Below, one piece after another: positions 3,813-64,000 of a DNA stretch of 64,000 bases (position 1 is its first letter; every line of letters begins with the position of its first letter). Origin of the DNA: Basidiobolus meristosporus CBS 931.73. Taxonomy: Eukaryota > Fungi > Basidiobolomycota. The notes under the pieces were generated by a model. It was given only the letters and a program-made list of their open reading frames with translations, was not told the origin of the DNA and ran no database searches. The stretch lies in assembly GCA_002104905.1 (NCBI GenBank), contig MCFE01000324.1, forward strand, positions 30,910 through 94,909, in the 5' to 3' direction. Both the position numbers and the translations under genes were made by a program.

Positions 3813-6800
3813 TTATATCTGAGTCAAGAAAGTCAAGCCCTACACAATGCCTGCCGTCAGTACCGGTCGGAATGGTGGACTATGCAATGGGTCACTTACA
3901 TTGGATTCCAAATACCCCGCCAGGCCATCCGAGTTCTGCTTACTGGCTGCCAGGAACTTCTTCAGGTCCACTTTCGATTGCTTGTACTCGGTTGCCAACT
4001 GCGCTTCGCCCTGCACAAGAACGTAAGGTTCAGCTTTCCCGAATGGGAACTCACTTGCACAGACCGGGACTTACCTGCTCATCTCTTCTTCGCTTGAGGA
4101 AAGACGCCACGACCTTGGACGCGGGCGGGTTCAGAGCCGACGACTTTGTCAACGGCTCCAGCACGCGTGGTAGATCGGCCAGCTCGATTCGGGCCCCCTC
4201 CATCATGATCCCCATGTACTCGAAGGCCTGTGGGACGTCTATCGAGATGTCCTCCAGTTCGGATGCGACCGCGACGACGCTATCCACGAAGGCATTCTTT
4301 TCGATGATGTGCTCGGTGGCCAAGGTGTTGAGGAGGTTACTGGTTTGCTTGACTTGGTCCGGCTTCTTGTCAAACGCCTCGAAGAAGAACTCGGTCACTA
4401 CGTGCTCATGGTATTCGGGACCACCGAGCTCCTGTATACACAGTTTCACCTCGTTCACGTCGCGGACCGAGAAATACTCCTCGATCATGGCCTTGATCTT
4501 AGCGTGGGCTTCATCCTTGCTCAGTTTGCCCTTTGCCGTCGGGGCGGAGTTGGCGAGGTTTCTCTCGGGGGTGGTAGGTTCCTTGGTCGAGTCGTCGGCC
4601 TTCTTGGATCTTTCCGAGGACATCAATGCGCTAAACATGTTCTTGCTGTTGCTGTGGTTCTTAGGCTTGGCATCATCCTTTCCCTTTGTGTCCGCACTCT
4701 TCCAGCCTTTAGAGCCTCCCCCGAGCACGCCAAATACGCCGCCACCTGGCCCGAGGCTGACCTGAGCCCCTGTCTTGCTACGTGTGAAGTTCCCGAAGCC
4801 AGAAAGATCCACCTTGCGAGAGGTGTTGCTGGCGGTGTTTCCAACTGTGTTCCAGCCGTCATGGGACATACCGCCAGAGCGTCGGTCTCTGCGTTCCGAG
4901 CCGGTACGAGAGAGATGATGGTGGTTCGGTCCATAGCCTCTGCCCCCGGAGCTAGTCGTTTTCCTCAGCATCTCCGCAGTCTCCTCCTTCTCCTTCTGTG
5001 CATCCTCGTGGATCTGAGAGATGGTCTTGGGGCCAGCGGCTTCCCTTCGAGGCACCCAGTTGTGAGCACGTAGCTCGATGATGTCGAGGAGCATGAAGCG
5101 GATGCGGCTGCTTAATTTACGGTTCACCGACATCTCCTTCACTCGGGCGAAGTAGGTGTCCATGTAAGCCTTCGCTTCTTTACGATCCAGCTGCTTTCCG
5201 ACGGTGGTCATCAGTTTGCACAGACTTTCCGTCTCTTCCTCCTCAGGAGATTGGACGTTGCTGAGCAAGCGTTTGATGCATTCGTGCATGATTCGCTCGG
5301 TCAACATCCCCAACTTGAACAGCTCCCCGATGAACATAATCAGGCCCAAGCCACGACGCTTGGCCTTTGCCGCTATGTAGTACTCATCACTGAGCAATGC
5401 ATCGGCGCCTTCGGCGGCGGGATCCAGGGGTGAGTTGACCTTCCAGCCTTTCTCGAACTCCTCCTGGCATCTGCTCAGCAGATATTTGCGGAACAGGGAG
5501 CCGCCGATGATGTACTTGCCGTCCTTGTTCTTGACGTTCTCGTCCTTGACCTCCGGACTGAGCTTGTCCATCATTCTCCGGCAGAGCGAGGCGTAAATGG
5601 ATACGAAGTTCGGCTCGTCGGTGGCCTTCTCGAACGTGATCTGGATCACGGTCTGGAGGGATTTCCCGTCGTTCTCCTGGGCGGAAAGGTTTCCGTACTC
5701 CGTAATCTTCTCGCTGATCGAGTCGAACTTCTCCAGGGTCAGCTTGTTGAGGAGTGACTTGACCTTGCGCACTATATCCTCGCTCCTGATCTCATCCTCG
5801 TGGTTGCTGGTCGGCTTTAAGGAGACGGGGACCCATCGGTTTTCGGAATGGTCCAGCGGGGCCACTTCGTCCAACGGAATGGTGGGCCCGCCGATTTGTG
5901 GTCGGTCATGCTTACGCTTGTCCCCACGACCAGAGCGAGAGCCACGGTTATCTCCTCGGGGACCCATGTTAAGGTGCATGCCCTGGTTTGATCCAATATT
6001 CAGGCCCATCCCCATAGGCATTGATGGCATGCCGCCACTCGCCGTTCTTGGACCCAACCCGCGGCCGAAGCCACCCATGCCATTCCGGTGCATATTCGGC
6101 CCTGGGAATCGCTCCTCGTTGTTGCGGGGTGTGTGCTTGAATGCCCCCATGTCATTGGGAAAGGCATTCGGTCCTTTAAAGCTTCCGCGGCCGGCACCCC
6201 CAGGTCTACGGCCCATACTGCTAGGCCTCCTCTCGGCACTCTCCTCGATTCCGAGGGATTCCAGGCTTGGCATGCTGGCCGGTTTCTCCCTGCACACCTC
6301 TGAGAACTGCAGCAAAAACGAGCGGTCGTACCGTAGTTTTCCCTCGGTGACCGAGGCGGGGCCTTGAATGTTGGGAGGATAAGGCACATGATTCAATTGG
6401 TCGTGGTTAAGAATGCTTGGTGTGGTCGGGTTGGCGTCGGGTTTGACCGAGTCTTCGCATTGCTCTTCCACATCCTCGTCAGCTTCGCTCTCACTGAGTG
6501 TCGCCTCACTGTTATCGATGGCTGTGGCATCGTCGACCGTCTTCTTGGCATCGTCGGTGGTCTTGAGAGCATCGTCTACCTCAGGCTCCGCGCTTACAGG
6601 TTCTACGGGTGCTTTCTCGGCTTCGACCAGTAGCTCTGATGCTTGCTCTGTAGAGCTAGCCTCAGCTGCCTTGGATTCTACGAGAGCTACATTACTGTGA
6701 GAGGGTTCGGCCAGCAGGCTGCCGGCTGCAGGGAGCTTGTCACTATCTACTGCTGGATGCTCTTCTGAGATTGCATCTACGGTTGCTTGGGCGTCATTAT

Positions 6801-8761
6801 TCTTGTGGGTCTCTTCGGAGACCTCGGGATGAGCCTGCAATACAGGAAGAATTTCAACTGCATCAGACTTGATCTCCTCCGACTTAGCACCAGTCACCCC
6901 AGATGGGAGAGTCTCTTCTGTCGCCGAATGGTGGCTCTCATCCTTCGCCGGCTCCGGAGCCACCTCGGCCTTGACAATCGGCACTGGGGCCTCTTTCTTG
7001 ATCTCCAACTCCTGGACGACACTCTTGACGTCCACCTTTTTATCGGGCTCCTCGTGGTGTTGCAGTTTGGTGGCAGGGTTGACGATTGGTATGGCCTTGG
7101 AGATCTTCTTCTGGGGCACGCTAAAGAACTCCGCATCGGAGTCTAGCGACTTGGGATCCCTATCCTTCTTCTCCGCCTGGCTTGCCGCAGCGGCGAGGGC
7201 CTCAGTGGATGAGGATTTCTTGGAAATGTCCACCACACCACCCGTCTCGGGATTCACAATCTTGATCGCCTTGCTCTGCTTCGGCTGCGGTGTCACGAAC
7301 CCACCGGAGCCGGAGGGCATCCGCTGCTGAGGAATCCCACCCGGCATGTGAGGAACCACCCCGTAAGGCATCTGGTACACTGGCCTATAGTACGCCTGCT
7401 GCGTCGAAGGATCGAACTGCGGGGGGTAGCTAGCATACTGGTACGGGTACTAAAAATACGAGAATCATCAATGTTTGCTTTCGGGGGGAAGTCTACAAGA
7501 TACATACATATGGCGCACCCCACGCTTGCACTGGAGTACCCGGAGGGATCGCTACCGACATGGGCGACATGCTTGGGGACAAGGTAACGTGTGGGATAGG
7601 TGGGGTGAGTGGGATTTGGGCCGGGCTGAGGCCTGGCTTTTCTCTACCTCTCTGCTGGGGTGACGTAAACTGGCCGTGAACGGCAGGGCCATTGGCGAGG
7701 ATGGGGGAAGCCATAGTCATAGAGATAGGAGACTGTGGGTATGGCGGCCGGATATGTGTTTGTAGTGGTGAGGGATGAGGCTGATGCATTTGTAAAGGGG
7801 ATTGCGGGTGAAAATGATGAGACGGTTGGTGTGCAGGTGGTGCGTGGTGTACAGTTGGGGAGGGGATACTTGGCGGTCTTGGCGAAGGTTGGGGCGTCCG
7901 ATGAGTAGGCTGGGCCTCCGGGTATCCATTCGGATGAGCAGTGTGGGGTTTCGACTTGGAGCCATCAGAAGCTGATGGGCCTCTGTAGTTCGGATTAGTA
8001 CTGCTTTTCGAATGGTAGCCGCCGTAAGATTTATTGGAGTTATCCTGGAGCCGGTTGTGGAGCTGAGGAGAGTGTGAACCGCCCCTAGAGCCATTTTGAT
8101 ATCTCGAACTGCCGCCTCCCACCGGCCGAACGGGTGTAGGGGGCCTTGGTGAGGATTTCAGAGGGAAGGACTGGGAAAGTTTTAGTGGTGGGGAGACATC
8201 ATCTAAACGACTTTGCCTTTTACTCACCGCGGCCTCTTTAGAGATCACGACTGGGGAAGTTGGATTTTTGCTGAAAGGTGGCTCGGTATTTAGCGAGCTC
8301 TGGCCCAAAGTTCCGAATTGAATCCCAGGCGCTGCAAAAATACCAGGGTAAGATGGTTGAAAAGTGGCCCGTGGGGAAGTGACTTGGTTACCTGTGGTGT
8401 TCGGGTTGGGCTGAGAGGGAGTGTCGGCCGATTTAGAAAAAGGTTTTTTCCCCCAAGCATTATTACTTGAGGTCAGATGTGAAGGGTTCCGTGGGCCGGA
8501 TCTAATAGGTGGATAGCAGTTAAGGAGAGCAAGTGGGACAAGTCAGCAATGGGCTGTTCAAAGCAAGTAAGGATACGAGTAATGTGGTGTCTTTCCCGAG
8601 GTGGAGGGAGCCCCATTTGTGTTTTTGTGTTGTGTGGATGGAATGGTTGATACTGGCTCAGAAGCGGTGGATTTCGATTGAGTGGACGGTTGCTGTCTAG
8701 TGGTTTGGGCATATGAGATAGGCGGTGCACCGTTACTAAAATGATTGGACTTGCGGTTCAT
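3813..8761 (-). CDS. TIF4631: Translation initiation factor eIF4G (eIF4E-binding motif, MIF4G and MA3 domains), multi-exon
   Basis: YDRSFLLQF (YxxxxL-phi), KVKSLLNKLT...FEKATDEPNF MIF4G, C-terminal MA3 (MIEEYFSVRD). Manual splicing gives terminal exons at 3813-3839 and 3900-4010; the start MNRKSNH at 8761 is approximate. Confidence 0.93.
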
Positions 8762-25160: not shown

Positions 25161-25586
25161 GATTAAGGTGGATAGTACGGTAGGCTGTTGATGACAGGCA
25201 GCGGTATATATAATTACAAAATAGGGATCATCTGAGGTCTTGGCAAGCCCTTACACACCAAACCACGTTTAGATCCTCTGAATGGTTCAAATGTTCTGCG
25301 GAATCTTGAAATTATTCTAGAACCTTACTTGGCTAGACACTCCTGAATTATCACATGGTATTTGATGAGCTAGGGTTAGGGTTGGGGATGCGTGGATGCG
25401 GGAATGCCTCCGATGATGAATTGGTGCAAACAGAATGTTCCAATCGTTTTCGCAAGAGTTAATCGGAGGTTTTCTGTTGATGTTGCTACAATGTTGGCTT
25501 CTGAGTCATAAATAATGGCGAGGCGGGTGGATTTTCGAGGCTCCCGCACAACCCCCTTAACCCTTTAACCTAACCGCCTAACCTTC

Positions 25587-34763: not shown

Positions 34764-35283
34764 ACACGTACACCAGGATTCATGGACTATCTCTCCCATT
34801 CAATCCAACAATAAACTTGCTTATACATCAATCATATCGTTTCATGCTTATAAAGGTGGTTAATTTCGCATTACCCGCTATTTCCCCGCTATTTCCCCTA
34901 ACCCTTAATCACCCTGTGTCCTTAATCATCGTACTTTGAAAGAGTATTAGCTTCGTGATTAACCAAGGTCCTCCAATGCACTCATGTTGAGTCAGAGGAT
35001 CCGATAAGATAAGACAAATGGATCCTACACCAAGAATATGCCAGAAGATCCGTTTATGGTTGAGTAACTTTTGTCCTACACAAAGTTGCCATTTGCTTGA
35101 CGCTCATCTCCAGATTAAAATTTTATCTCTTTTATCAAGACTGATTACGATCACTCTAAGCGCTTCTATTGGTTATCCCGAGCAAGGGTTTTCTCGAGCA
35201 GCATTACAAAAGCTTACTGGAGGCGTAATGGCTCGTCAGTTGCTACAGCAGCCTCATAACACTTCTTTTTGAATACAATCAGC

Positions 35284-54350: not shown

Positions 54351-55256
54351 CCATATCAGCTTTGATCCACATCAGACTTGACTCATCCATCAAAGAAACT
54401 AAAATATCATTCAGATCTGCAGATAACATCCAGGATATTCGACACATATGACAACACTCAAATAAGGACTTTGTGAATGATGCACATTTCCGCTATTTAG
54501 CTATAAAAGTGCAATTATCCTGGGAAAATTCTCAGCCTTCGTATGGAAGTGGGACCAGAGCTCTAAGACAAGACTCTCATTACAGACAATGTATCTTGAG
54601 AGCTGTATTGACTCTGCGTGATATTAGTGGAGTTACGCGGTGCATGCGTTAGGTATGACCATCCAACACATGCTTGGATGTTTTGCCTGATGATCATTCT
54701 ATGGTGAGTTAGAGAAACCGGCGGTCAAGAAAAATCAAAAGGATAAAACACTACTAGCACACCGTCGTCAAGCTAAAACAGGTAGTTTTTGATTCTCTTT
54801 ATATTTCCATAACCTCTCGAATTTCACTTCATTTTCTTCCGCTAGGGCTCATAATGACGATCATCGCTGTCAATACACTAGCCGCATCCCTTGAATTTTA
54901 AGGCTACCGGAGCTAGTACTCTCTACAGGAAATGAAGCCACTCAACTGTTATCTTAACTGTGATTGGTGAAGACCGACTTTTGTTGTGACACAGACATAT
55001 TTGGTGGCTGGTGCTACCTGAACTCTGACTGTAAGTGCAAGAATATAGTTAAAGTAGCTGTTGATAGGTACATTGATTCCCGCAAGCTTTACGCTAATAA
55101 CTTGATTCCTGACTGGTAAAGAAAATAATATGCCCAATTTATATTATAAAACCATTCATTTGTACCTTGACATGAATTCTTACAGACATATGTAAAAGAT
55201 ATTGCATTTGCTCTATTGGAATGAGCCTCATAATTCTTGTGGTGACTAAGAGTGCC

Positions 55257-56180
55257 TAGGGTTAGGGGGGGGGAGACAGTCACCAACAGGTGAAATCTTT
55301 ATTTCAGTTGAAACAAAGAAGCCAGCACTACTGTTGTAGCTTTAATACAATAGTGTGTAACTGAGGGGAATTTGTAGGTAAGTGAATAAGGAGAGATGAT
55401 AGTTCTTCAGTGCCCAAGATATTGTTCAGTGGGAAGGTGGGTAGCAAGAGGGGTAAGAATGATTTGTGAACAATATTAAAGAGGGGAATATGATAAGGAT
55501 TGGTATTCATTATAAAGGGAGTGTGCTGCTTCAGATATTGCTGCCAAAGGTCTGTCAAGTACTTCTGGTAGGCCAGCTTGGGTTTTTCTGACTGCAGAAT
55601 ATAGTGAGCAAATTTCTTGACTTCAGGATCTCCAAGTATAGTTCTCCAGCAGGAGCCAGGTGTAGTGTGGTGTGTTCTCTTCCAGGCCTTAATCAATGGG
55701 TTGTTGCAGTGGTGAAGTCTGAGATATAATCTGGTTCTAAGGTATAGAAGTCTAATCTTATAGAGCATAAGCCCAAAAGCACCAAGAATAGCATGTCTGT
55801 AGGGGCATTCAGGTAAATGAGGCACCAAGGAGGTAATGCACCATACTGCAAAGTTGTCAAGCTTAGTGCAGTCTCTAGAAGTAAGAGAGAGAAGTGGTAA
55901 GCCAAATTCCAGGACAGGGAAGACAAACTGCTTGAGTAGAAGGAGGCAGTTGGGAGCTGAAGTTGTAGGAGGAGTAACAGCCAGTAGCTTGTGGAGTGCC
56001 TGTCTTGCCAGGATAATTCTCTTCTTCAGGTGTGCTCCAGAGTCTAGTCCAGTAGGAAGGAAAGGAAAGCCAAGATATGTAGCAGAAACCTGAGCAGGTA
56101 GAGTGGAGTTCTCCAAGTTGATGGGAGAGCCCAAAGGTACTGTCTTTGCAATGGAAAGCTGGAGATTATTCTTCTGCAGA
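55257..56180 (-). mobile_element. Telomere-associated LINE family A, copy A1 (5'-truncated, ~0.9 kb); innermost array unit
   Basis: C-terminal ORF 55328-56134 matches the 61566-63746 RT ORF; shared 3' motif; joined to unique DNA through TAGGGTTAGGG. Confidence 0.88.
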
Positions 56181-56830
56181 TAGGGTTAGGGAAGGGAAAT
56201 TCACCAAGGTGGGTGAAATCTTTATTTGATTTCATACAAGTCTAACTACAAATAAAGAAGCCAGCTGGGAATAGAAAATTCCCAAAGTAAACAATAAGGT
56301 AAATATGAATAATTCTAAGCTAAAGTTAAAGCAGTATCCCAGAGTACACTGGAGTTCAGGTTCATGGGGGAGTGAAGTAGATAAGCTTGAGAGATATAAT
56401 AATCTTTTAAGAAGTGGGTAACCACAGGTGAAGGGGTGTTTTTGATAAGTGAAGTGAATCTTGAGAGCAGAGATTCCTCTAATGAGAAGGTCTTGTAAAC
56501 TGGAGAATCAAGACACTCTTTAAAGACATGGTCAGTAGGTTCCCAGGAAAACTGGTCAGAGACATTTTGAGAGAATTGTTTAGCAATACTTTTGTCAAGT
56601 ACTACCTCCAGAGTGTGATGGTTGATAAATCTCATGTTAACAATCTTGGATAAGTTGTAACCTTATTGCTTGAGAAACATTCTATGCTCAGACATAGGAA
56701 TAAATTTCACATTGGCTAAGTAGCAGACAGCCCAGTCAGTAGCAGGAGGCAAATCAGAAGTGGCAGGAAACTTTCTTTCAGTCTTGGGAGGAGCAGCAGG
56801 ATGTCTTGAGGAAGCAGGAACAGATTTTTT
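56181..56830 (-). mobile_element. Telomere-associated RT-less coding unit (family C), 5'-truncated, one in-frame stop
   Basis: Frame open from 56830 to the stop at 56315 except TAA at 56663-56665; unrelated to the RT ORFs; ends in the shared 3' motif plus TAGGGTTAGGG. Confidence 0.72.
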
Positions 56831-57130
56831 GGGTTAGGGGGGGGAGACAGTTGCCAACAGGTGAAATCTTTATTTCAGTTGAAACAAAGAAGCCAGCGCT
56901 ACTGTTGTAGCTTTGATACAAGAGTGTGTAGCTGAGGGGAATTTGTAGGTAAGTTAATAAGAAGTGATGATAGCTCTTCAGTGCTCAAGACTCTGTTCAG
57001 TGGGAAGGGGGGTAGCAAGAGAGGTAAGAATGACTTGTGAACAACATTAATGAGAGGAATGTGATAAGGATTGATATTCATCATAAAGGGAGTGTGCTGC
57101 TGCAGATATTGCTGCCAAAGGTCTGTCAAG
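56831..57130 (-). mobile_element. LINE family A, copy A2 (3'-terminal ~300 bp)
   Basis: Near-identical to the 3' end of A3; begins GGGTTAGGGGGGGG-AGACAG. Confidence 0.88.
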
Positions 57131-59246
57131 TAGGGTAGGGGAGGGAAAGTCACTAAGTTGGTGAAATCTTTATTTGAGTTAAGAACTAATCTAAGTACAA
57201 ATAAAGAAGCCAATTAAGAGGTCTAGAACCTCTCTAATAAGTAATCTAATTTATGTTTTGTTTCATCTCTAATGTTTGTTTCAATAAAGTAAAGCTCATC
57301 AGGGGTAAATATAAAATTCAGGGGTTTTGGGGGAAGTACAAATTGTAGATGTTTCTGATCAATATAATCCTAGACTGGAACCCAGCCTGGGATTAGGTGT
57401 AGTAGGAAAGGTGTGTGGACTTGTAAGTAGCTCTGCCACATAGATCTTAGATGGTCCTGAGCCAGTAGTCTTGGTTTCTCAGCTTTTTGAAGTTTTGAAG
57501 CAAGCTCTGTTACTACAGCAGAGCCAACCAGGGTGTGCCAGCAAGAAGATTTCAGGGAGGAGTTAGATTGAAGCCATTGTTTGATGGAGGGGTTATGTGA
57601 TTTCTGAAGTTTGACTAGGAAGGAAGCCCGGAGATAGATCATTTGGATTTGGTATGGGTAGAACCCAAAGGCTCCATTAGTTGCATGGATATAGGGAGAT
57701 ACTGGAAGATAAGGTACCAAGGATCTGATACACTGATGGAGAAATTTATCCAGGCGGTGAAGTTCTCTGGAGGTTAGGGGTATAATGTGGAGACCAAATT
57801 CAAGTACCGGCAGTACATACTGCTTCAGAAGTATAGGGATCTTTTGAATTGGAGTGTCTGGAGTGACTACTACCAGAAGCTTTTTGAGAGCCTGTTGGGC
57901 GAGACGGATCCTATTACTCAGGTGGAGCTTTGAGTCAATCCCATGTTGACAAAACGGCAGACCTAGATATATTGCAGTTTGTTGTGGCAGAATGCTAGTG
58001 TTCTGTATAGTTGTAGTGCATCCAATTGGGACTGTCTTGGAAATTGAGAGTGAGAGGTTGTTGGCAGCCAAGTACTTCTCAATGATGGCAGTGTCTGCTA
58101 TGGGATTAGGAGTAGCAATCTTGATATCATCCACATAAAGAGTCAGTAGTGGATAGGGAGAGTCTGGTGAGGGGCCTTTTGGAAATAAAGGAAAGTCATG
58201 TAGGAATATCACAAATAGTAAGGGACCTAGTACAGATCCTTGGACTACTCCATTTGGAACCTCATAAGTCTCTGATGTACAACTTGGATGCAAAATTTTG
58301 GCTGAGTTCTCACAAAATAGAGAACGTACTAGAACGGTCATTGGTAGTGTGGTAACTGCTAATAGCTTTCTCCAAAGCAGAGCTCTGTCCACAGAGTCAA
58401 AGGCTTTAGTAATGTCAAACAGAATGGTTGGCAATGAGAATTGAAGTGAATGATCATGGCTTAGCACTACAGCCATATCCAAGGAGAGTTTGGGCAAGAA
58501 GCCAAACTGAGAAGGATGGAATGGATATAGTTGAGATTGCAAGGATCTTGCTATTATAAGCTCAAAGATTTTCCGGCAGGTTGGTAGGAGTGAAACTGGC
58601 CGGTAGGAACCTGGGAGTGAGTGTTTCCCCTTCCCTTTGTATAAGGGTATTACATTTGCCTGTGACCAGGCCTTTGGGGTAGTCAATTGTTGGGCACAGA
58701 TAGAGTAGAATGGGAGAAGTAAGTGACTCATTTTGGAGTAGCACACCCGGAGTAGATTGTAGGTAATCAAGTCATGTCCAGGTGCAGTATTTGCAGAAAG
58801 CTTCTTTAAAATTTTCTCCAGAAGCTTTGCTGAAACAAAAATTGGAGATGTTGGACTGCTGGATATGTTACCAGTATGGTAGAAAGGAGGAGTGGGATGC
58901 ACGGTTGAATCAAAGAATATAGGGGCCAGTTTGTCTGGTGATGGTATACTCCTTGCTTGGGATCTCATGGCTTTGTATACTCTTGATATGGACCATGTGG
59001 TGGCATTCATATTTACTAAGGGCAAGGTATCCATGATATGAGCCCATAATCTAGTATGCTCAGTGATCTGTAGTGACTTGGAGTAGGAGATTGCGCTTTC
59101 CAGGAGGTTCTGTGTTTTTGGGTTAGGGAAACATAGGTAGCTGGAATTCAAGGCAGAAATGATGGATTTCCATATAAGTTGGTTTGCAGATGGCTTTTGG
59201 TTGGACTTGGTGGGCAGGGCCCAACTGCCAGTGATTATGATTATGA
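57131..59246 (-). mobile_element. Telomere-associated LINE family B, copy B1 (5'-truncated, ~2.1 kb, complete RT core, premature stop at 57370)
   Basis: TAPGHD, YRPVSLL, QFGF, FDITKAFDSV, GVVQGSVLGP, LYVDD; TAG at 57370-57372 corresponds to TTG in B2. Confidence 0.9.
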
Positions 59247-60420
59247 TTAGGGTCAGGGGAGGGAAAGTCACCAGGTTGGTGAAATCTTTATTTGAGTTAA
59301 GAACTAATCTAAGTACAAATAAAGAAGCCAATTAAGAGGTCTAGAATCTCTCTAATAAGTAATCTAATTTATGTTTTGTTTCATCTCTAATGTTTGTTTC
59401 AATAAAGTAAAGTTCATCAGGGGTAAATATAAAATTCAGGGGTTTTGGGGGAAGTACAAATTGTAGATGTTTCTGATCAATATAATCCAAGACTGGAACC
59501 CAGCCTGGGATTAGGTGTAGTAGGAAAGGTGTGTGGACTTGCAAGTAGCTCTGCCACATAGATCTTAGATGGTCCTGAGCCAGTAGTCTTGGTTTCTCAG
59601 CTTTTTGAAGTTTTGAAGCAAGCTCTGTTACTACAGCAGAGCCAACCAGGGTGTGCCAGCAAGAAGATTTCAGGGAGGAGTTAGATTGAAGCCATTGTTT
59701 GATGGAGGGGTTATGTGATTTCTGAAGTTTGACTAGGAAGGAAGCCCGGAGATAGATCATTTGGATTTGGTATGGGTAGAACCCAAAGACTCCATTAGTT
59801 GCATGGATTTAGGGAGATACTGGAAGATAAGGTACCAAGGATCTGATACACTGATGGAGAAATTTATCCAGGCGGTGAAGTTCTCTGGAGGTTAGGGGTA
59901 TAATGTGGAGACCAAATTCAAGTACCGGCAGTACATACTGCTTCAGAAGTATAGGGATCTTTTGAATTGGAGTGTCTGGAGTGACTACTACCAGAAGCTT
60001 TTTGAGAGCCTGTTGGGCAAGACGGATCCTATTACTCAGGTGGAGCTTTGAGTCAATCCCATGTTGACAAAACGGCAGACCTAGATATATTGCAGTTTGT
60101 TGTGGCAGAATGCTAGTGTTCTGTATAGTTGTAGTGCATCCAATTGGGACTGTCTTGGAAATTGAGAGTGAGAGGTTGTTGGCAGCCAAGTACTTCTCAA
60201 TGATGGCAGTGTCTGCTATGGGATTAGGAGTAGCAATCTTGATATCATCCGCATAGAGAGTTAGTAGTGGATAGGGAGAGTCTGGTGAGGGGCCTTTTGG
60301 AAATAAAGGAAAGTCATGTAGGAATATCACAAATAGTAAGGGACCTAGTACAGATCCTTGGACTACTCCATTTGGAACCTCATAAGTCTCTGATGTACAA
60401 CTTGGATGCAAAATTTTGGC
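59247..60420 (-). mobile_element. LINE family B, copy B2 (5'-truncated, ~1.2 kb, nonsense mutation at 59809)
   Basis: Near-identical to the 3' half of B1; LYADD; TAT>TAA relative to B1; junction TTAGGGTCAGGGG. Confidence 0.9.
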
Positions 60421-60944
60421 TTAGGGGATGAAAGTCACCAAGTGGTGAAATCTTTATTTACTTATGACAAGTATCTAAAGAAGCCAAGTTAATCTGAAGT
60501 TATTCCTAGAAAGCTAGGTCTGAGAGATATCTTCCTGGTAAGCCAGGTCTGAGAGTTGAGAGGCTGAGTGGTACTATATTTCCTAGTTAGCTAGGTCTGC
60601 AAGAGGTTTCCTGGAAAGCCAGGCCTGAGAAGTGAGAATCTGAATATATCTGAGCTAAGTTATACTGGTTTGCGGTAGCTGAATTGTGGCCGGAATGGCC
60701 AGTAGACTGGGGGAACTAAGATGAATTTCTGGGTAATCACTGGCCAAATTTACTGGGCAAATCTGGCCAATTAGCATTTCAAGGATCTCAGCCAATCAGA
60801 GCCTTTACTTTGCCCGATGGTTGATCAAGCCATCTCCCAATGAGCACACATCAATTTATTAATCAAATTTTGCTGGATCCAGGATTTGAACCCACAACCA
60901 TGGGTATGGAAGGGTTAGGGATAACCACAAGGCTAAGTGTTCTT
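60421..60944 (-). mobile_element. tRNA-headed SINE-like unit (family D), copy D1, ~525 bp
   Basis: A box TAGCCTTGTGG (60935-60925) and B box GGTTCAAATCC (60892-60882) at tRNA spacing; non-coding; shared 3' motif. Confidence 0.78.
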
Positions 60945-61470
60945 GGTAGGGGGAGGAAAGTCACCAAGTGGTGAAATCTTTATTTACTTATGACAAGTAT
61001 CTAAAGAAGCCATGTTAATCTGAAGTTATTCCTAGATAGCTAGGTCTGAGAGATATCTTCCTGGTAAGCCAGGTCTGAGAGTTGAGAAGCTGAGTGGTAC
61101 TATATTTCCTAGTTAGCTAGGTCTGAGTGAGGTTTCCTGGAAAGCCAGGCCTAAGAAGTGAGAATCTGAATATATCTGAGCTAAGTTATACTGGTTTGCG
61201 GTAGCTGAATTGTGGCCGGAATGGCCAGTAGACTGGGGGAACTGAGATGAATTTCTGGGCGATCACTGGCCAAATTTACTAGGCAAATCTGGCCAATTAG
61301 CATTTCAAGGATTTCAGCCAATCAGAGCCTTTACTTTGCCCAATGGTTGATCAAGCCATCTCCCAATGAGCACACATCAATTTATTAATCAAATTTTGCT
61401 GGATCCAGGATTTGAACCCACAACCATGGGTATTGAAGGGTTAGGGATAACCACAAAGCTAAGTGTTCTT
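60945..61470 (-). mobile_element. tRNA-headed SINE-like unit (family D), copy D2
   Basis: Near-identical to D1 with the same 5' end; A box 61461-61451, B box 61418-61408. Confidence 0.78.
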
Positions 61471-61511
61471 GGTTAGGGTTAGGGTTTAGGGTTAGGGCTA
61501 GGGTAGGGGGG
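61471..61511 (+). repeat. Interstitial degenerate telomeric tract between D2 and A3
   Basis: GGTTAGGGTTAGGGTTTAGGGTTAGGGCTAGGGTAGGGGGG. Confidence 0.9.
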
Positions 61512-63767
61512 AGACAGTCACCAACAGGTGAAATCTTTATTTCAGTTGAAACAAAGAAGCCAGCGCTACTGTTGTAGCTTTGATACAAGAGTGTGTAGCT
61601 GAGGGGAATTTGTAGGTAAGTTAATAAGAAGTGATGATAGTTCTTCAGTGCTCAAGACACTGTTCAGTGGGAAGGGGGGTAGCAAGAGAGGTAAGAATGA
61701 CTTGTGAACAACATTAGTGAGGGGAATGTGATAAGGATTGATATTCATCTTAAAGGGAGTGTGCTGCTGCAGATATTGCTGCCAAAGGTCTGTCAAGTAC
61801 TTCAGGTAGGCCAGCTTGGGTTTTTCTGACTGCAGAATAAATTCAGCAAACTTCTTGACTTCAGGATCTCCAAGTATAGTTCTCCAGCAGGAGCCAGGTG
61901 TTGTGTGGTGTGTTCTCTTCCAGGCCTTAATCAGTGGATTGTTGCAGTTGTGAAGTCTGAGGTATAATCTGGTTCTAAGGTAGAGAAGTCTGATTTTATA
62001 GGGCATAAACCCAAAAGCACCAAGAATAGCATGTCTGTAGGGGCATTCAGGCAAATGAGGCACCAAGGAGGTAATGCACCATACTGCAAAGTTGTCAAGC
62101 TTAGTGCAGTCTCTAGAAGTAAGAGAGAGAAGTGGTAAGCCAAATTCCAGGACAGGGAAGACAAACTGCTTGAGTAGAAGGAGGCAGCTGGGAGCTGAAG
62201 TTGTAGGAGGAGTAACAGCCAGTAGCTTGTGAAGTGCCTGTCTTGCCAGGATAATTCTCTTCTTCAGGTGTGCTCCAGAGTCTAGTCCAGTAGGAAGGAA
62301 AGGAAAGCCAAGATATGTAGCAGAAACCTGAGCAGGTAGAGTGGAGTTCTCCAAGTTGATGGGAGAGCCCAAAGGTACTGTCTTTGCAATGGAAAGCTGG
62401 AGATTATTCATCTGCAGATACTGGTGGATGGTCTGGGAGTCTTGTTGCACATTGGAGGAGGATATTCTGATGTCATCAGCAAAGAGAGTAACCAGGCAGT
62501 CAGCTGAGAGTCTTGGGAAGTCATTCAGGAAGATGGCAAACAGTATAGGACCAAGCACAGAGCCTTGAACCACTCCATTAGGAACGGAGAACACAGCTGA
62601 TTGCTCACTTGGGTGCAGAATTCTTGCTTGTGGATCCAGAAACAGAGACCTGACAAGGAGGGTGAGAGAGGTACTGGAGAAGCATTGCAACTTGGACCAA
62701 AGCAGATTTCTGTCAACTGAATCAAAGGCCTTAGTAATATCAAACAGAACTGAGGGATACTTGCACTGGAGAGAGTGATCTTGGCTAAGTATGACTGCAT
62801 ATTCCAAGGAGAGGCCAGGAACAAAGCCAAACTGTGCAGGATGAAACTTGAGGGAGTCAGAGTAGAGCTCCTGAGCAAGCAGAAGCTCAAACACCTTTCT
62901 GCAGGTGGGCAGCAGAGATATTGGCCTGTAGGAGCTAGGATCCAGGTGCTTTCCTTTACCCTTGTACAGTGGCAGAACATTTGCAAAGGACCATTCCTCA
63001 GGAGTAGAAAGCTGGGCTGAGCATTGCTGAAACAGTGGAAGCAGAGGTGCAGACATGGCCTTGGTACTAGTCTTCAGAAGCTCATAGGAGATTGTGTCCA
63101 CACCTGGAGCAGTAGAGTTGGGAAGCCTCTTGAGCACATTATGAATTCTCCTTTGATCAAGTGCAAGTGGGATGGGCAGAGTCTTGAAGTCAGGATGAAA
63201 GCCAGGAGTTGAGTACTGCTTTGTAGAGAAGAAGATGTTAGCCAGCTGTTCTGTTGAAGGTAACTTCCTGGAAGAGGGCCTCATTGCCCTGTAGAGTCTT
63301 GATACTGTTCTTGTTATAGAGTTGGAAGATTGCAGAGGCAAGGAACTCATAATATGATCCCAGAGCTGAGTATGCAGAGTGTGGTGAATTGCCTTGGAGT
63401 GGTGTATTGCTGTCAGGAGGAGTTTCTCTGTTTTTGGGTTAGGGAAACTCAGGTAGCTTTGTTGCAGGGCTGAAACAATGGATTCCCATTTTCTTGAGGT
63501 AACAGCAGTAGTCTTGCATGGCAGTGAGAGGGAGGCAGACACCAGAATCAGATGCTTCACAAAGAGCCAGGCATAGTTGAGATCATCTGGCAGAGAAAGT
63601 AGTAAACTGGCAAGCTTCAAGTAGTTCCCAAAGTCTTTCTTCTGATTCTTGGTAGCTTTGTGGGTGAGCACAGTAAGTTTTGGCAGCTTCTTCTTCACAA
63701 CTGGTTGCATAGAAAGGGACCAGGCTGGGTGGTCAGAGGCTCTCAAGGATCCTAGCTCAGCTCCGGA
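61501..63767 (-). mobile_element. LINE family A, terminal copy A3 (~2.27 kb), 5'-truncated and capped directly by the telomere
   Basis: Shared 3' motif at 61506-61561; reading frame runs uninterrupted into the telomeric repeats. Confidence 0.92.
61566..63767 (-). CDS. Non-LTR (LINE-type) reverse transcriptase ORF2, N-terminally truncated, no internal stops
   Basis: STAPGVD, YRPISLL, QFGF, FDITKAFDSV, GVVQGSVLGP, LFADD; N-terminal SDH motif suggests the last strand of an APE endonuclease. Confidence 0.92.
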   Translation of the reverse strand, partial: SGAELGSLRASDHPAWSLSMQPVVKKKLPKLTVLTHKATKNQKKDFGNYLKLASLLLSLPDDLNYAWLFVKHLILVSASLSLPCKTTAVTSRKWESIVSALQQSYLSFPNPKTEKLLLTAIHHSKAIHHTLHTQLWDHIMSSLPLQSSNSITRTVSRLYRAMRPSSRKLPSTEQLANIFFSTKQYSTPGFHPDFKTLPIPLALDQRRIHNVLKRLPNSTAPGVDTISYELLKTSTKAMSAPLLPLFQQCSAQLSTPEEWSFANVLPLYKGKGKHLDPSSYRPISLLPTCRKVFELLLAQELYSDSLKFHPAQFGFVPGLSLEYAVILSQDHSLQCKYPSVLFDITKAFDSVDRNLLWSKLQCFSSTSLTLLVRSLFLDPQARILHPSEQSAVFSVPNGVVQGSVLGPILFAIFLNDFPRLSADCLVTLFADDIRISSSNVQQDSQTIHQYLQMNNLQLSIAKTVPLGSPINLENSTLPAQVSATYLGFPFLPTGLDSGAHLKKRIILARQALHKLLAVTPPTTSAPSCLLLLKQFVFPVLEFGLPLLSLTSRDCTKLDNFAVWCITSLVPHLPECPYRHAILGAFGFMPYKIRLLYLRTRLYLRLHNCNNPLIKAWKRTHHTTPGSCWRTILGDPEVKKFAEFILQSEKPKLAYLKYLTDLWQQYLQQHTPFKMNINPYHIPLTNVVHKSFLPLLLPPFPLNSVLSTEELSSLLINLPTNSPQLHTLVSKLQQ

Positions 63768-64000
63768 GGGTTAGGGTTAGGGTTAGGGTTAGGGTTAGGG
63801 TTAGGGTTAGGGTTAGGTTAGGGTTAGGGTTAGGGTTAGGTTAGGGTTAGGGTTAGGGTTAGGGTTAGGGTTAGGGTTAGGGTTAGGGTTAGGGTTAGGG
63901 TTAGGGTTAGGGTTAGGGTTAGGGTTAGGGTTAGGGTTAGGGTTAGGGTTAGGGTTAGGGTTAGGGTTAGGGTTAGGGTTAGGGTTAGGGTTAGGGTTAG
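63768..64000 (+). repeat. Telomere (TTAGGG)n, about 39 repeats visible, with one TTAGG variant near 63813
   Basis: Direct reading; G-rich strand runs 5'->3' toward the window end. Confidence 0.99.

Follow-up and report, generated by a model that had tools for sequence, protein, structure and literature searches.

Telomere-dedicated retroelements are known from few lineages, namely the Drosophila HTT elements, Bombyx SART/TRAS, Giardia GilM/GilT, Chlorella Zepp, rotifer Athena and Pyricularia MoTeR (PMC10088271); MoTeR1 and MoTeR2 of Pyricularia oryzae are the only fungal telomeric retrotransposons in that 2023 survey. Long interspersed nuclear elements (LINEs) of the stringent type require 3' stem-loops, which are common to their short interspersed nuclear elements (SINEs) (PMC5135761). 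Penelope-like elements (PLEs) that lack an endonuclease (EN) attach to G-overhangs through reverse-complement telomere repeats (PMC8557442). We have analysed a 64,000-nt stretch of Basidiobolus meristosporus CBS 931.73 (assembly GCA_002104905.1, contig MCFE01000324.1, positions 30,910 to 94,909 of the forward strand), referred to hereafter as the window. One end of it carries a stack of retroelement copies belonging to four families: the LINEs A and C, an element B that apparently has only open reading frame 1 (ORF1), and a SINE-like element D. All copies end in the same short 3' module. To our knowledge, the choice of an RNA and its placement on a chromosome end are understood experimentally only for SART1, and we know of no earlier SINE-like partner of a telomere-dedicated LINE. 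A literature search returned no report of such a partner, and a full-text search for work on telomeric retrotransposons of Basidiobolus gave nothing relevant.

The stringent LINE/SINE pairs of eel (UnaL2/UnaSINE1) and zebrafish (ZfL2), with which the SART1 3' untranslated region (UTR) is named as a comparable 3' tag, resemble the Basidiobolus system in several respects (PMC5135761). A LINE and a short non-coding partner have a 3' stem-loop in common, a short repeat-like tail replaces poly(A), and loops and stems are under different constraint. In the window, too, LINE and SINE-like elements end in the same 3'-terminal sequence, and the terminal stem-loop has comparative support. The differences are that two (possibly three) hairpins are present, that the host telomere unit serves as the terminal repeat, that an ORF1-only element is also tagged, and that all copies seen lie at chromosome ends. 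In addition, the Basidiobolus LINE is not known to be of the L2 clade, and binding of its reverse transcriptase (RT) to the tag is predicted.

Similarities to systems that occupy telomeres are equally partial. The EN-deficient PLEs Athena and Coprina (Gladyshev and Arkhipova, 2007, cited in PMC8557442) also form terminal stacks beside telomerase; their copies are 5'-truncated, carry telomere repeats in reverse complement at the 3' end and are parted by short telomere stretches. The Basidiobolus LINEs differ in having a LINE-type RT with an N-terminal apurinic/apyrimidinic endonuclease (APE) fold instead of a PLE RT, and in having no hammerhead ribozyme detectable by Rfam in 55000-64000; a two-hairpin tag and SINE and ORF1-only partners are not known from Athena. 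Drosophila HeT-A/TART/TAHRE (PMC5537684) likewise form a consortium of related LINEs that is added head-to-tail with 3' ends towards the centromere, has an APE domain in ORF2 and shows variable 5' truncation at the extreme end; for its RT-less, Gag-only member, B is a candidate counterpart. In Basidiobolus, however, the host keeps a TTAGGG telomere, with a (TTAGGG)38+ cap, the joints contain a telomere unit and not oligo(A), a SINE-like partner is present, and a short structured module takes the place of a long shared 3' UTR. Bombyx SART1 and TRAS1 (R1 clade) are also APE-type LINEs dedicated to telomere repeats, but they use one fixed nucleotide inside long tracts, need at least three repeats and end in poly(A) (PMC7265360). 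The Basidiobolus copies have no poly(A), are mostly separated by spacers of 0-2.5 telomere units, abut truncated elements and do not sit at one fixed site. MoTeRs also inhabit a fungal host with TTAGGG telomeres and are interleaved with telomere repeats. They are CRE-like, their endonuclease is of the restriction-like type and their telomere-like repeats are 5'-terminal, whereas the elements described here have an APE-like domain, a 3' telomere unit and a structured 3' tag common to SINE-like and ORF1-only partners. We conclude that the Basidiobolus system resembles both stringent 3' tags and end-adding telomeric retroelements and is a member of none of the systems compared.

Eight stacked retroelement copies with a common 3' module

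The last 8.7 kb of the window form a chromosome tip, in which eight retroelement copies lie head-to-tail beneath a (TTAGGG)n telomere (Table 1). The sense strand of all eight units is the minus strand, their 3' ends face the centromere, and all except the two D copies are 5'-truncated. Unit A1 meets unique subtelomeric DNA via about two telomere units, and at the other end of the stack A3 is directly capped by telomerase repeats. Each unit reads on the plus strand as TTAGGG, extra G's, antisense element 3' end and antisense 5' end, which is the order that priming from the 3' OH of the G strand gives.

The 16-mer GGTGAAATCTTTATTT was found at eight exact sites (55289, 56212, 56860, 57160, 59278, 60444, 60970 and 61527), all on one strand. 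Its expected number by chance is 0.08, and none of 100 shuffles reached eight. These are the eight plus-strand sites listed in the initial annotation of the window; no others exist in the 64 kb, even when two mismatches are allowed.

The 16-mer forms part of a module of ~65-85 nt, composed of a GGCU box, a 10-bp stem-loop (SL1), UU, a 5-bp stem-loop (SL2; UCACC-N4-6-GGUGA) and an unpaired, pyrimidine-rich tail. This arrangement, proposed when the window was first annotated, was recovered on the sense strand of every unit, followed by CCCTA(A). The SL1 variants then quoted for A, for B and C, and for D were correct, including the loop-closing C-G/G-C swap and the G.U pair of A, and the consensus given for SL2 was as claimed. 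AAUAAA lies within the 3' arm of SL1. The tail had been said to resemble the telomere complement, and in nearly all copies it does close with a C-run and UA(A), equivalent to one C-strand telomere unit. SL2 had also been described as damaged in A2 and B1. This holds for A2 (GGCAA); in B1 the hairpin is intact and has a sixth pair, and the second damaged copy is instead C1 (AGUGA). GGCU, 16-mer, SL2 and tail are common to the LINEs A and C and to the SINE-like D. When the window was searched with a covariance model (CM) of the module, only the eight element 3' ends matched, all on the minus strand. A search of 55000-64000 with Rfam in E-value mode gave no match up to E 1, and hence no known ribozyme, tRNA or other family.

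Structure and covariation of the module RNA

Ten distinct module variants of ~100 nt each, from the window and its relatives, were folded by minimum free energy (MFE) and aligned, and 15 proposed pairs were scored. The CM derived from this alignment recovered 23 full copies at E < 1e-9, on which the pair counts hold. All 10 MFE folds contained both hairpins, separated by two unpaired U, and left the tail unpaired; z-scores were -1.7 to -4.05. The blocks CUU, UUU, AAUAAA, AUU, CACC and UGGUG were invariant in the ten-variant alignment. Mean pairwise identity was 0.80 in the GGCU box and 5' arm of SL1, 0.91 from the 3' arm of SL1 to the 5' arm of SL2, and 0.91 in UGGUG and its flank (SL2 3' arm). 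In the loops of SL1 and SL2 it was 0.19 and 0.24, respectively, and it was 0.53 in the 100 nt upstream of the module.

The covariance-model analysis suggested in the initial annotation supported a paired RNA. Standard pairing was present in 96.7% of stem cells over the 15 pairs, compared with 90-91% in shuffled alignments, and the covariation score was 0.17-0.21 (0.206 in the ten-variant alignment), compared with ~0.075 after shuffling; in neither case did any of 500 shuffles reach the observed value. When partners were slid by 1-3 columns, covariation was at most 0.061. Compensatory changes, in which both sides of a pair differ, were found at 4 of the 15 pairs. The loop-closing pair of SL1 occurs as five types (G-C, C-G, A-U, U.G and G.U). 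Variant J has A-U for C-G at SL1 pair 2 and A-U for U-A at the outer pair of SL2, and variant G has A-U for U-A at pair 9. Of the two hairpins originally described as covarying, SL1 therefore qualifies, with three pairs. In SL2 no pair covaries in the window, and the relatives add one compensatory swap and two outer-pair mismatches.

G.U pairs occur at two SL1 pairs. On the antisense strand the same positions would be A.C mismatches, as the initial annotation had recognized for A, and matches of the CM to the reverse strand did not exceed 20 bits. Together these observations indicate that the sense RNA is the folded species. The module is kept among RTs that are 48-80% identical, its stems are conserved and its loops free to vary, and both compensatory and G.U changes preserve the pairs. 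We conclude from these comparisons of sequence that the module is a structured sense-strand RNA element under selection.

Table 1. Positions of the retroelement units, their 3' modules and associated features in the window (bits, CM score; z, fold z-score).
Feature	Position	Strand	Description
Unit A1	55256..56182	-	5'-truncated lineage-1 LINE; C-terminal part of ORF2 and module
A1 module	55265..55327	-	SL1 10 bp with 4-nt loop; SL2; C9 tail; 73.5 bits; z -3.7 (SL1 + SL2, unpaired tail)
Unit B1	56183..56830	-	5'-truncated ORF1-only element
B1 module	56186..56266	-	Long-loop SL1; SL2 intact, 6 bp; 74.8 bits; z -3.4
Unit A2	56831..57132	-	3' stub of A LINE, 300 bp
A2 module	56836..56898	-	3' arm of SL2 mutated to GGCAA; 57.2 bits, lowest in window
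Unit C1	57133..59246	-	5'-truncated lineage-2 LINE; 653-aa RT ORF; RVT_1 E 2.5e-20
C1 module	57135..57215	-	Closing pair of SL2 broken (AGUGA); 69.9 bits
Unit C2	59247..60421	-	5'-truncated C copy, shorter than C1
C2 module	59253..59333	-	77.2 bits; folded
Units D1 and D2	60422..61472	-	SINE-like; two full-length copies, ~525 bp each, with the same 5' end
D1 module	60420..60489	-	SL1 as 6 bp, internal loop, 5-6 bp; 70.7 bits
D2 module	60946..61015	-	75.5 bits; folded
Unit A3	61473..63770	-	Outermost; 5'-truncated A LINE; 726-aa ORF with RT; RVT_1 E 1.1e-24
A3 module	61503..61565	-	75.5 bits; ~6 irregular telomere units (61473-61509) before module on + strand
SL0	55328-55372, 56267-56290, 57216-57240, 61016-61045	-	Also just upstream of modules in relative contigs L004, L009 and L010
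Telomere tract (TTAGGG)n	63771..64000	+	At least 38 units; runs off window end

A third hairpin, SL0, was seen upstream of the GGCU box in nine of the ten variants, at a distance of at most 5 nt from the box in seven. Its sequence is wholly different in each family, and in A it overlaps the ORF2 stop codon. Taken singly, the SL0 hairpins rank in the top 6-28% of body windows; combined by Fisher's method they give ~0.03, by our own arithmetic and with lineages that are not independent.

The terminal telomere tract is almost perfect; TTAGG variants occur in it twice, near 63813 and near 63836. The inter-element tract at 61473-61509 is irregular (TTTAGGG, CTAGGG, TAGGG, TCAGGGG), possibly because of its age, or because the element RT slips or copies with low fidelity. 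Two lone telomere-like 12-mers, with one mismatch each, lie at 25370-25387 and 34896-34907; the CM search placed no module next to either.

Relatives, lineages and dependent families

A collection of 5.8 billion proteins contained only six close relatives, and the same six were returned with C ORF2 as query; the best match with a named source came from B. meristosporus CBS 931.73. Variants E, F, G, I, J and K of the module were taken from Logan/ENA contigs of these relatives. ORF2 of the elements bearing I, E and G is 80%, 63% and 60% identical to that of A, respectively. K is the module of the P0006 family, whose ORF2 is 48% identical to A and 66% to C, and F and J belong to short truncated elements without a classifiable body. 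Several of these contigs contain head-to-tail joints via one or two CCCTAA units. A metagenome-wide scan with a loose module-core pattern gave at least 120 loci; none of those listed was real after a stricter filter, and the scan is uninformative on distribution.

A second stack (L002) was found at the end of contig MCFE01000090.1 of the same B. meristosporus strain. It contains families A, B and C at 93-98% identity, with six modules, five of them having the exact 16-mer, and includes one nearly full-length C copy. Its unique flank is unlike that of the window, indicating a different chromosome end. Between a C and an A copy of this stack (6186-7060) lies ~880 bp of non-LINE DNA, in which a ~150-bp element (ACCTGTTGGGGTATGG...) occurs twice, with no module.

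The form of the module follows the lineage of the RT. SL1 is of the short-loop type in lineage 1 (A, I, E and G). In lineage 2, to which C and the P0006 family belong, it bears a long apical extension that begins UASUUAG. The B module is of the lineage-2 type, and D has UACUU in common with C. That module subtype tracks RT lineage argues for vertical co-inheritance of the tag with the RT, together with capture by dependents. The sharing of the tag fits this history, judged from the sequences; convergence in unrelated families does not fit. Conservation by recent gene conversion only was rejected, since the module is kept across samples and lineages.

The initial annotation had called the unit bodies unrelated, which was not upheld. 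The ORF2s of A and C have 50% amino acid identity over 619 aa, and by this measure A and C are sister APE-type LINE lineages. For the B ORF, homology was found to the C-terminal domain that characterizes ORF1 in the clade (24-28% identity, E 3e-13 to 4e-17). These two relationships, with the 66% identity between C and the P0006 family, rule out four unrelated families. The B copies have no RT, and the stop codon of their ORF is followed directly by the module; copy B1 has one in-frame stop. As every B copy seen is 5'-truncated, B is a candidate RT-less, ORF1-only member.

D is a non-coding element of ~525 bp in which an A-box-like motif and a B-box motif lie 43 nt apart in both copies. Neither ARAGORN nor Rfam called a tRNA in it. 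A tRNA origin was considered and not kept for this reason, and D is labelled only as A/B-box-bearing and SINE-like. In the D head, the stretch between the A-box-like motif and the B-box, roughly where an anticodon arm would lie, carries CCCTAACCC (1.5 telomere units; minus strand, 60893-60925 and 61419-61451). The 700 nt of 60900-61600 are covered by more than 3000 contig pieces from a single 114-Mb contig set of DNA run X1, so the D unit and module are extremely repeated in that sample. A search for RNA runs with a 3.3-kb stretch of C listed none, and one for runs of every type returned contig sets of DNA or of unknown kind.

Full-length relatives encode ORF1 and ORF2. ORF1 has a coiled-coil region and a conserved C-terminal domain, and matched no family in Pfam. 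ORF2 gave only a weak APE signal in Pfam, and a phmmer search of its EN region against PDB sequences found nothing useful; the APE fold was recognized only via structure prediction. The AlphaFold model of a 923-aa relative ORF2 (L001) had a mean pLDDT of 86.7. In Foldseek, its residues 1-825 matched the ORF2s of jockey, BS, X-element and R1 at E ~1e-33, slightly ahead of L1 and Tx1, and its first 210 residues matched ExoIII/APE1 folds. The closest Swiss-Prot structural matches were of the jockey group, with R1 nearly tied, in a ranking that comes from Foldseek and not from phylogeny. All members of the clade keep the EN motifs N, GDxN, D and SDH, and all have Asp in place of the Glu of the QET motif. 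On the predicted structure, the APE-like domain looks maintained.

Conserved blocks and a splice-donor-like site of the GTAAGT type are present in the long 5' UTRs of full-length relatives (L004 520-1170, L005 1-700 and L001 1-800). Their 5' ends, where complete, start near the motif CATCCATCCATCC, directly after the CCCTAACCCT of the preceding element. In L003, the Logan contig with P0006, the Illumina adapter AGATCGGAAGAGC forms the contig end (3840-3852) in the middle of SL1, showing that its module was cut artificially.

Junctions and the proposed role of the module

The A tail reads CUGUCU followed by C6-C9. The tails of B, C and D begin CUUUC (AUUUC in B1 of the window), and their C-runs are interrupted by U or A. 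Nearly all tails continue with TA or TAA and then 0-6 telomere units. Most junction spacers are of 0-2.5 units, and A3 on D2 has about six irregular ones, compared with 38 or more in the live telomere. The joints in DNA contigs of run X1 are similar, the next tail being separated from a truncated copy by 2-15 telomere-like letters. Short spacers beside a live tract of this length fit addition to very short or bare ends, the CCCUA(A) unit being carried by the RNA, rather than random nicking in a long tract. An exact C-run and TAA followed by a truncated element body was seen for D1 on C2, for one B copy of L002 on an A body, and for K on the 5' UTR of E; in J, which also has the exact C-run and TAA, and in the L002 C copy, a single telomere unit is followed by other non-telomeric DNA. 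As tails are joined to non-telomeric truncated ends with 0-1 unit, pairing with telomere repeats or with a G-overhang would not be obligatory. No A-runs were present at ~24 junctions inspected. At the joint between the 5' end of C1 and the tail of C2 (59229-59252), GATTAT occurs three times before TTAGGG on the plus strand (TAATCA three times in the sense direction), compared with once in the L002 C copy. The triple GATTAT looks like the result of stuttering, or of template jumping at microhomology to TAA in the tail.

The explanation towards which we lean is that the module serves as a stringent-type recognition tag for the ORF2 protein of the clade, and that its telomere-complementary end positions the RNA at a chromosome 3' end. 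The ORF2 protein, with its APE-like domain and RT, would pick its template by this cis-acting module. Such a role would account for the presence of the module in the autonomous A and C elements and for its acquisition or retention by B and D. The CCCUA(A) end would set the RNA on the 3' end of the G strand, or simply on an eroded chromosome 3' end; cDNA synthesis would start there, extending the chromosome, and telomerase would re-cap the new end. We infer RT binding, priming on the chromosome end and the position of the RNA 3' end from the sequences.

Several observations count against this explanation. Independent compensatory events are few, with one each at three pairs and several at one pair. 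SL2 is almost invariant, an A x G mismatch stands at its outer pair in F and in G, and SL1 of K contains a G x A mismatch. An alignment derived from a CM, moreover, tends to favour the structure. All variants keep AAUAAA unchanged, and conservation may therefore partly serve 3'-end formation. The L002 A copy near 7877 is without any TA(A), other joints are to non-telomeric ends, and the CCCTAA unit could be derived from the chromosome rather than encoded by the RNA. Finally, an APE fold with most catalytic motifs kept leaves room for a nick-dependent route.

The main rival, in our estimation rather unlikely, is that the module is chiefly a signal for 3'-end formation, in which AAUAAA would position the cleavage and C-run+UAA would be a Py(A)n-type cleavage site ~35 nt downstream. 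Each stacked element would then end its own transcript, and head-to-tail stacking does imply that each element needs its own terminator. The hairpins would only present or mask the hexamer, a function that can coexist with RT recognition, and the signal would do the job of the Athena hammerhead by exposing a telomere-complementary 3' end. The invariance of AAUAAA in 10 of 10 variants, though neighbouring stem positions change on both sides, agrees with such a signal, as do the roughly constant distance from hexamer to tail end and the failure of Rfam to find a ribozyme in 55000-64000. However, A-runs are missing from the junctions, so that any poly(A) tail would never be copied, and the hexamer is sequestered in a 10-bp stem. 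Nor does a plain poly(A) signal need a conserved SL1 5' arm, an SL2, a GGCU box or compensatory changes.

Insertion into duplex telomere repeats by the usual target-primed reverse transcription that depends on an endonuclease, as in SART and TRAS, appears improbable. The telomere unit after the tail would here be target DNA, and the module would be an RT tag without free-end priming. The ExoIII/APE1 match of the ORF2 EN fold, the similarity to jockey, BS, X-element and R1, the EN motifs conserved across the clade and the telomere units that flank most 3' ends are consistent with this route. Yet Drosophila TART retains an APE domain though it adds to ends, and the replacement of the QET catalytic Glu by Asp in every member counts against this route. 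SART1 requires at least three repeats (PMC7265360). Random nicking should trap long tracts, whereas the spacers here are mostly of 0-2.5 units beside at least 38 in the live telomere, and many 3' ends abut truncated bodies with no more than one unit, or with none in the case of the L002 copy near 7877.

In HeT-A, a promoter in the 3' end drives the next element. That the module is a comparable DNA-level promoter for the next proximal element, or that its identity reflects subtelomeric gene conversion without function, seems very improbable: each module does lie directly upstream of the 5' end of the next element in the same orientation, contains an A/T-rich, TATA-like block and resides in subtelomeres, which often recombine, but compensatory changes and sense-only G.U pairs indicate folded RNA and not duplex DNA, recent conversion cannot explain a module kept between samples and lineages with RTs 48-66% identical, and most downstream neighbours are 5'-truncated stubs.

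Recognition of the tag by the RT could, tentatively, be joined with 3'-end formation in one dual-purpose RNA device. The AAUAAA held in SL1 would direct cleavage exactly at C-run+UA|A, as a protein-dependent equivalent of the Athena hammerhead, and the same hairpins would recruit the RT onto critically short or bare ends. If this is true, Basidiobolus would possess an RNA-tagged back-up for the repair of chromosome ends beside telomerase, open to any tagged RNA, whether LINE, ORF1-only or SINE.

The module provides a compact, alignable tag of ~70 nt in a culturable fungus that still has telomerase, common to autonomous LINEs, an ORF1-only element and a very abundant SINE-like element. With natural compensatory variants at hand, template recognition by a LINE RT becomes approachable via mutagenesis of stems and tail. 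The system bears on whether tails prime at G-overhangs or at bare ends, and on the back-up of telomerase by retroelements.

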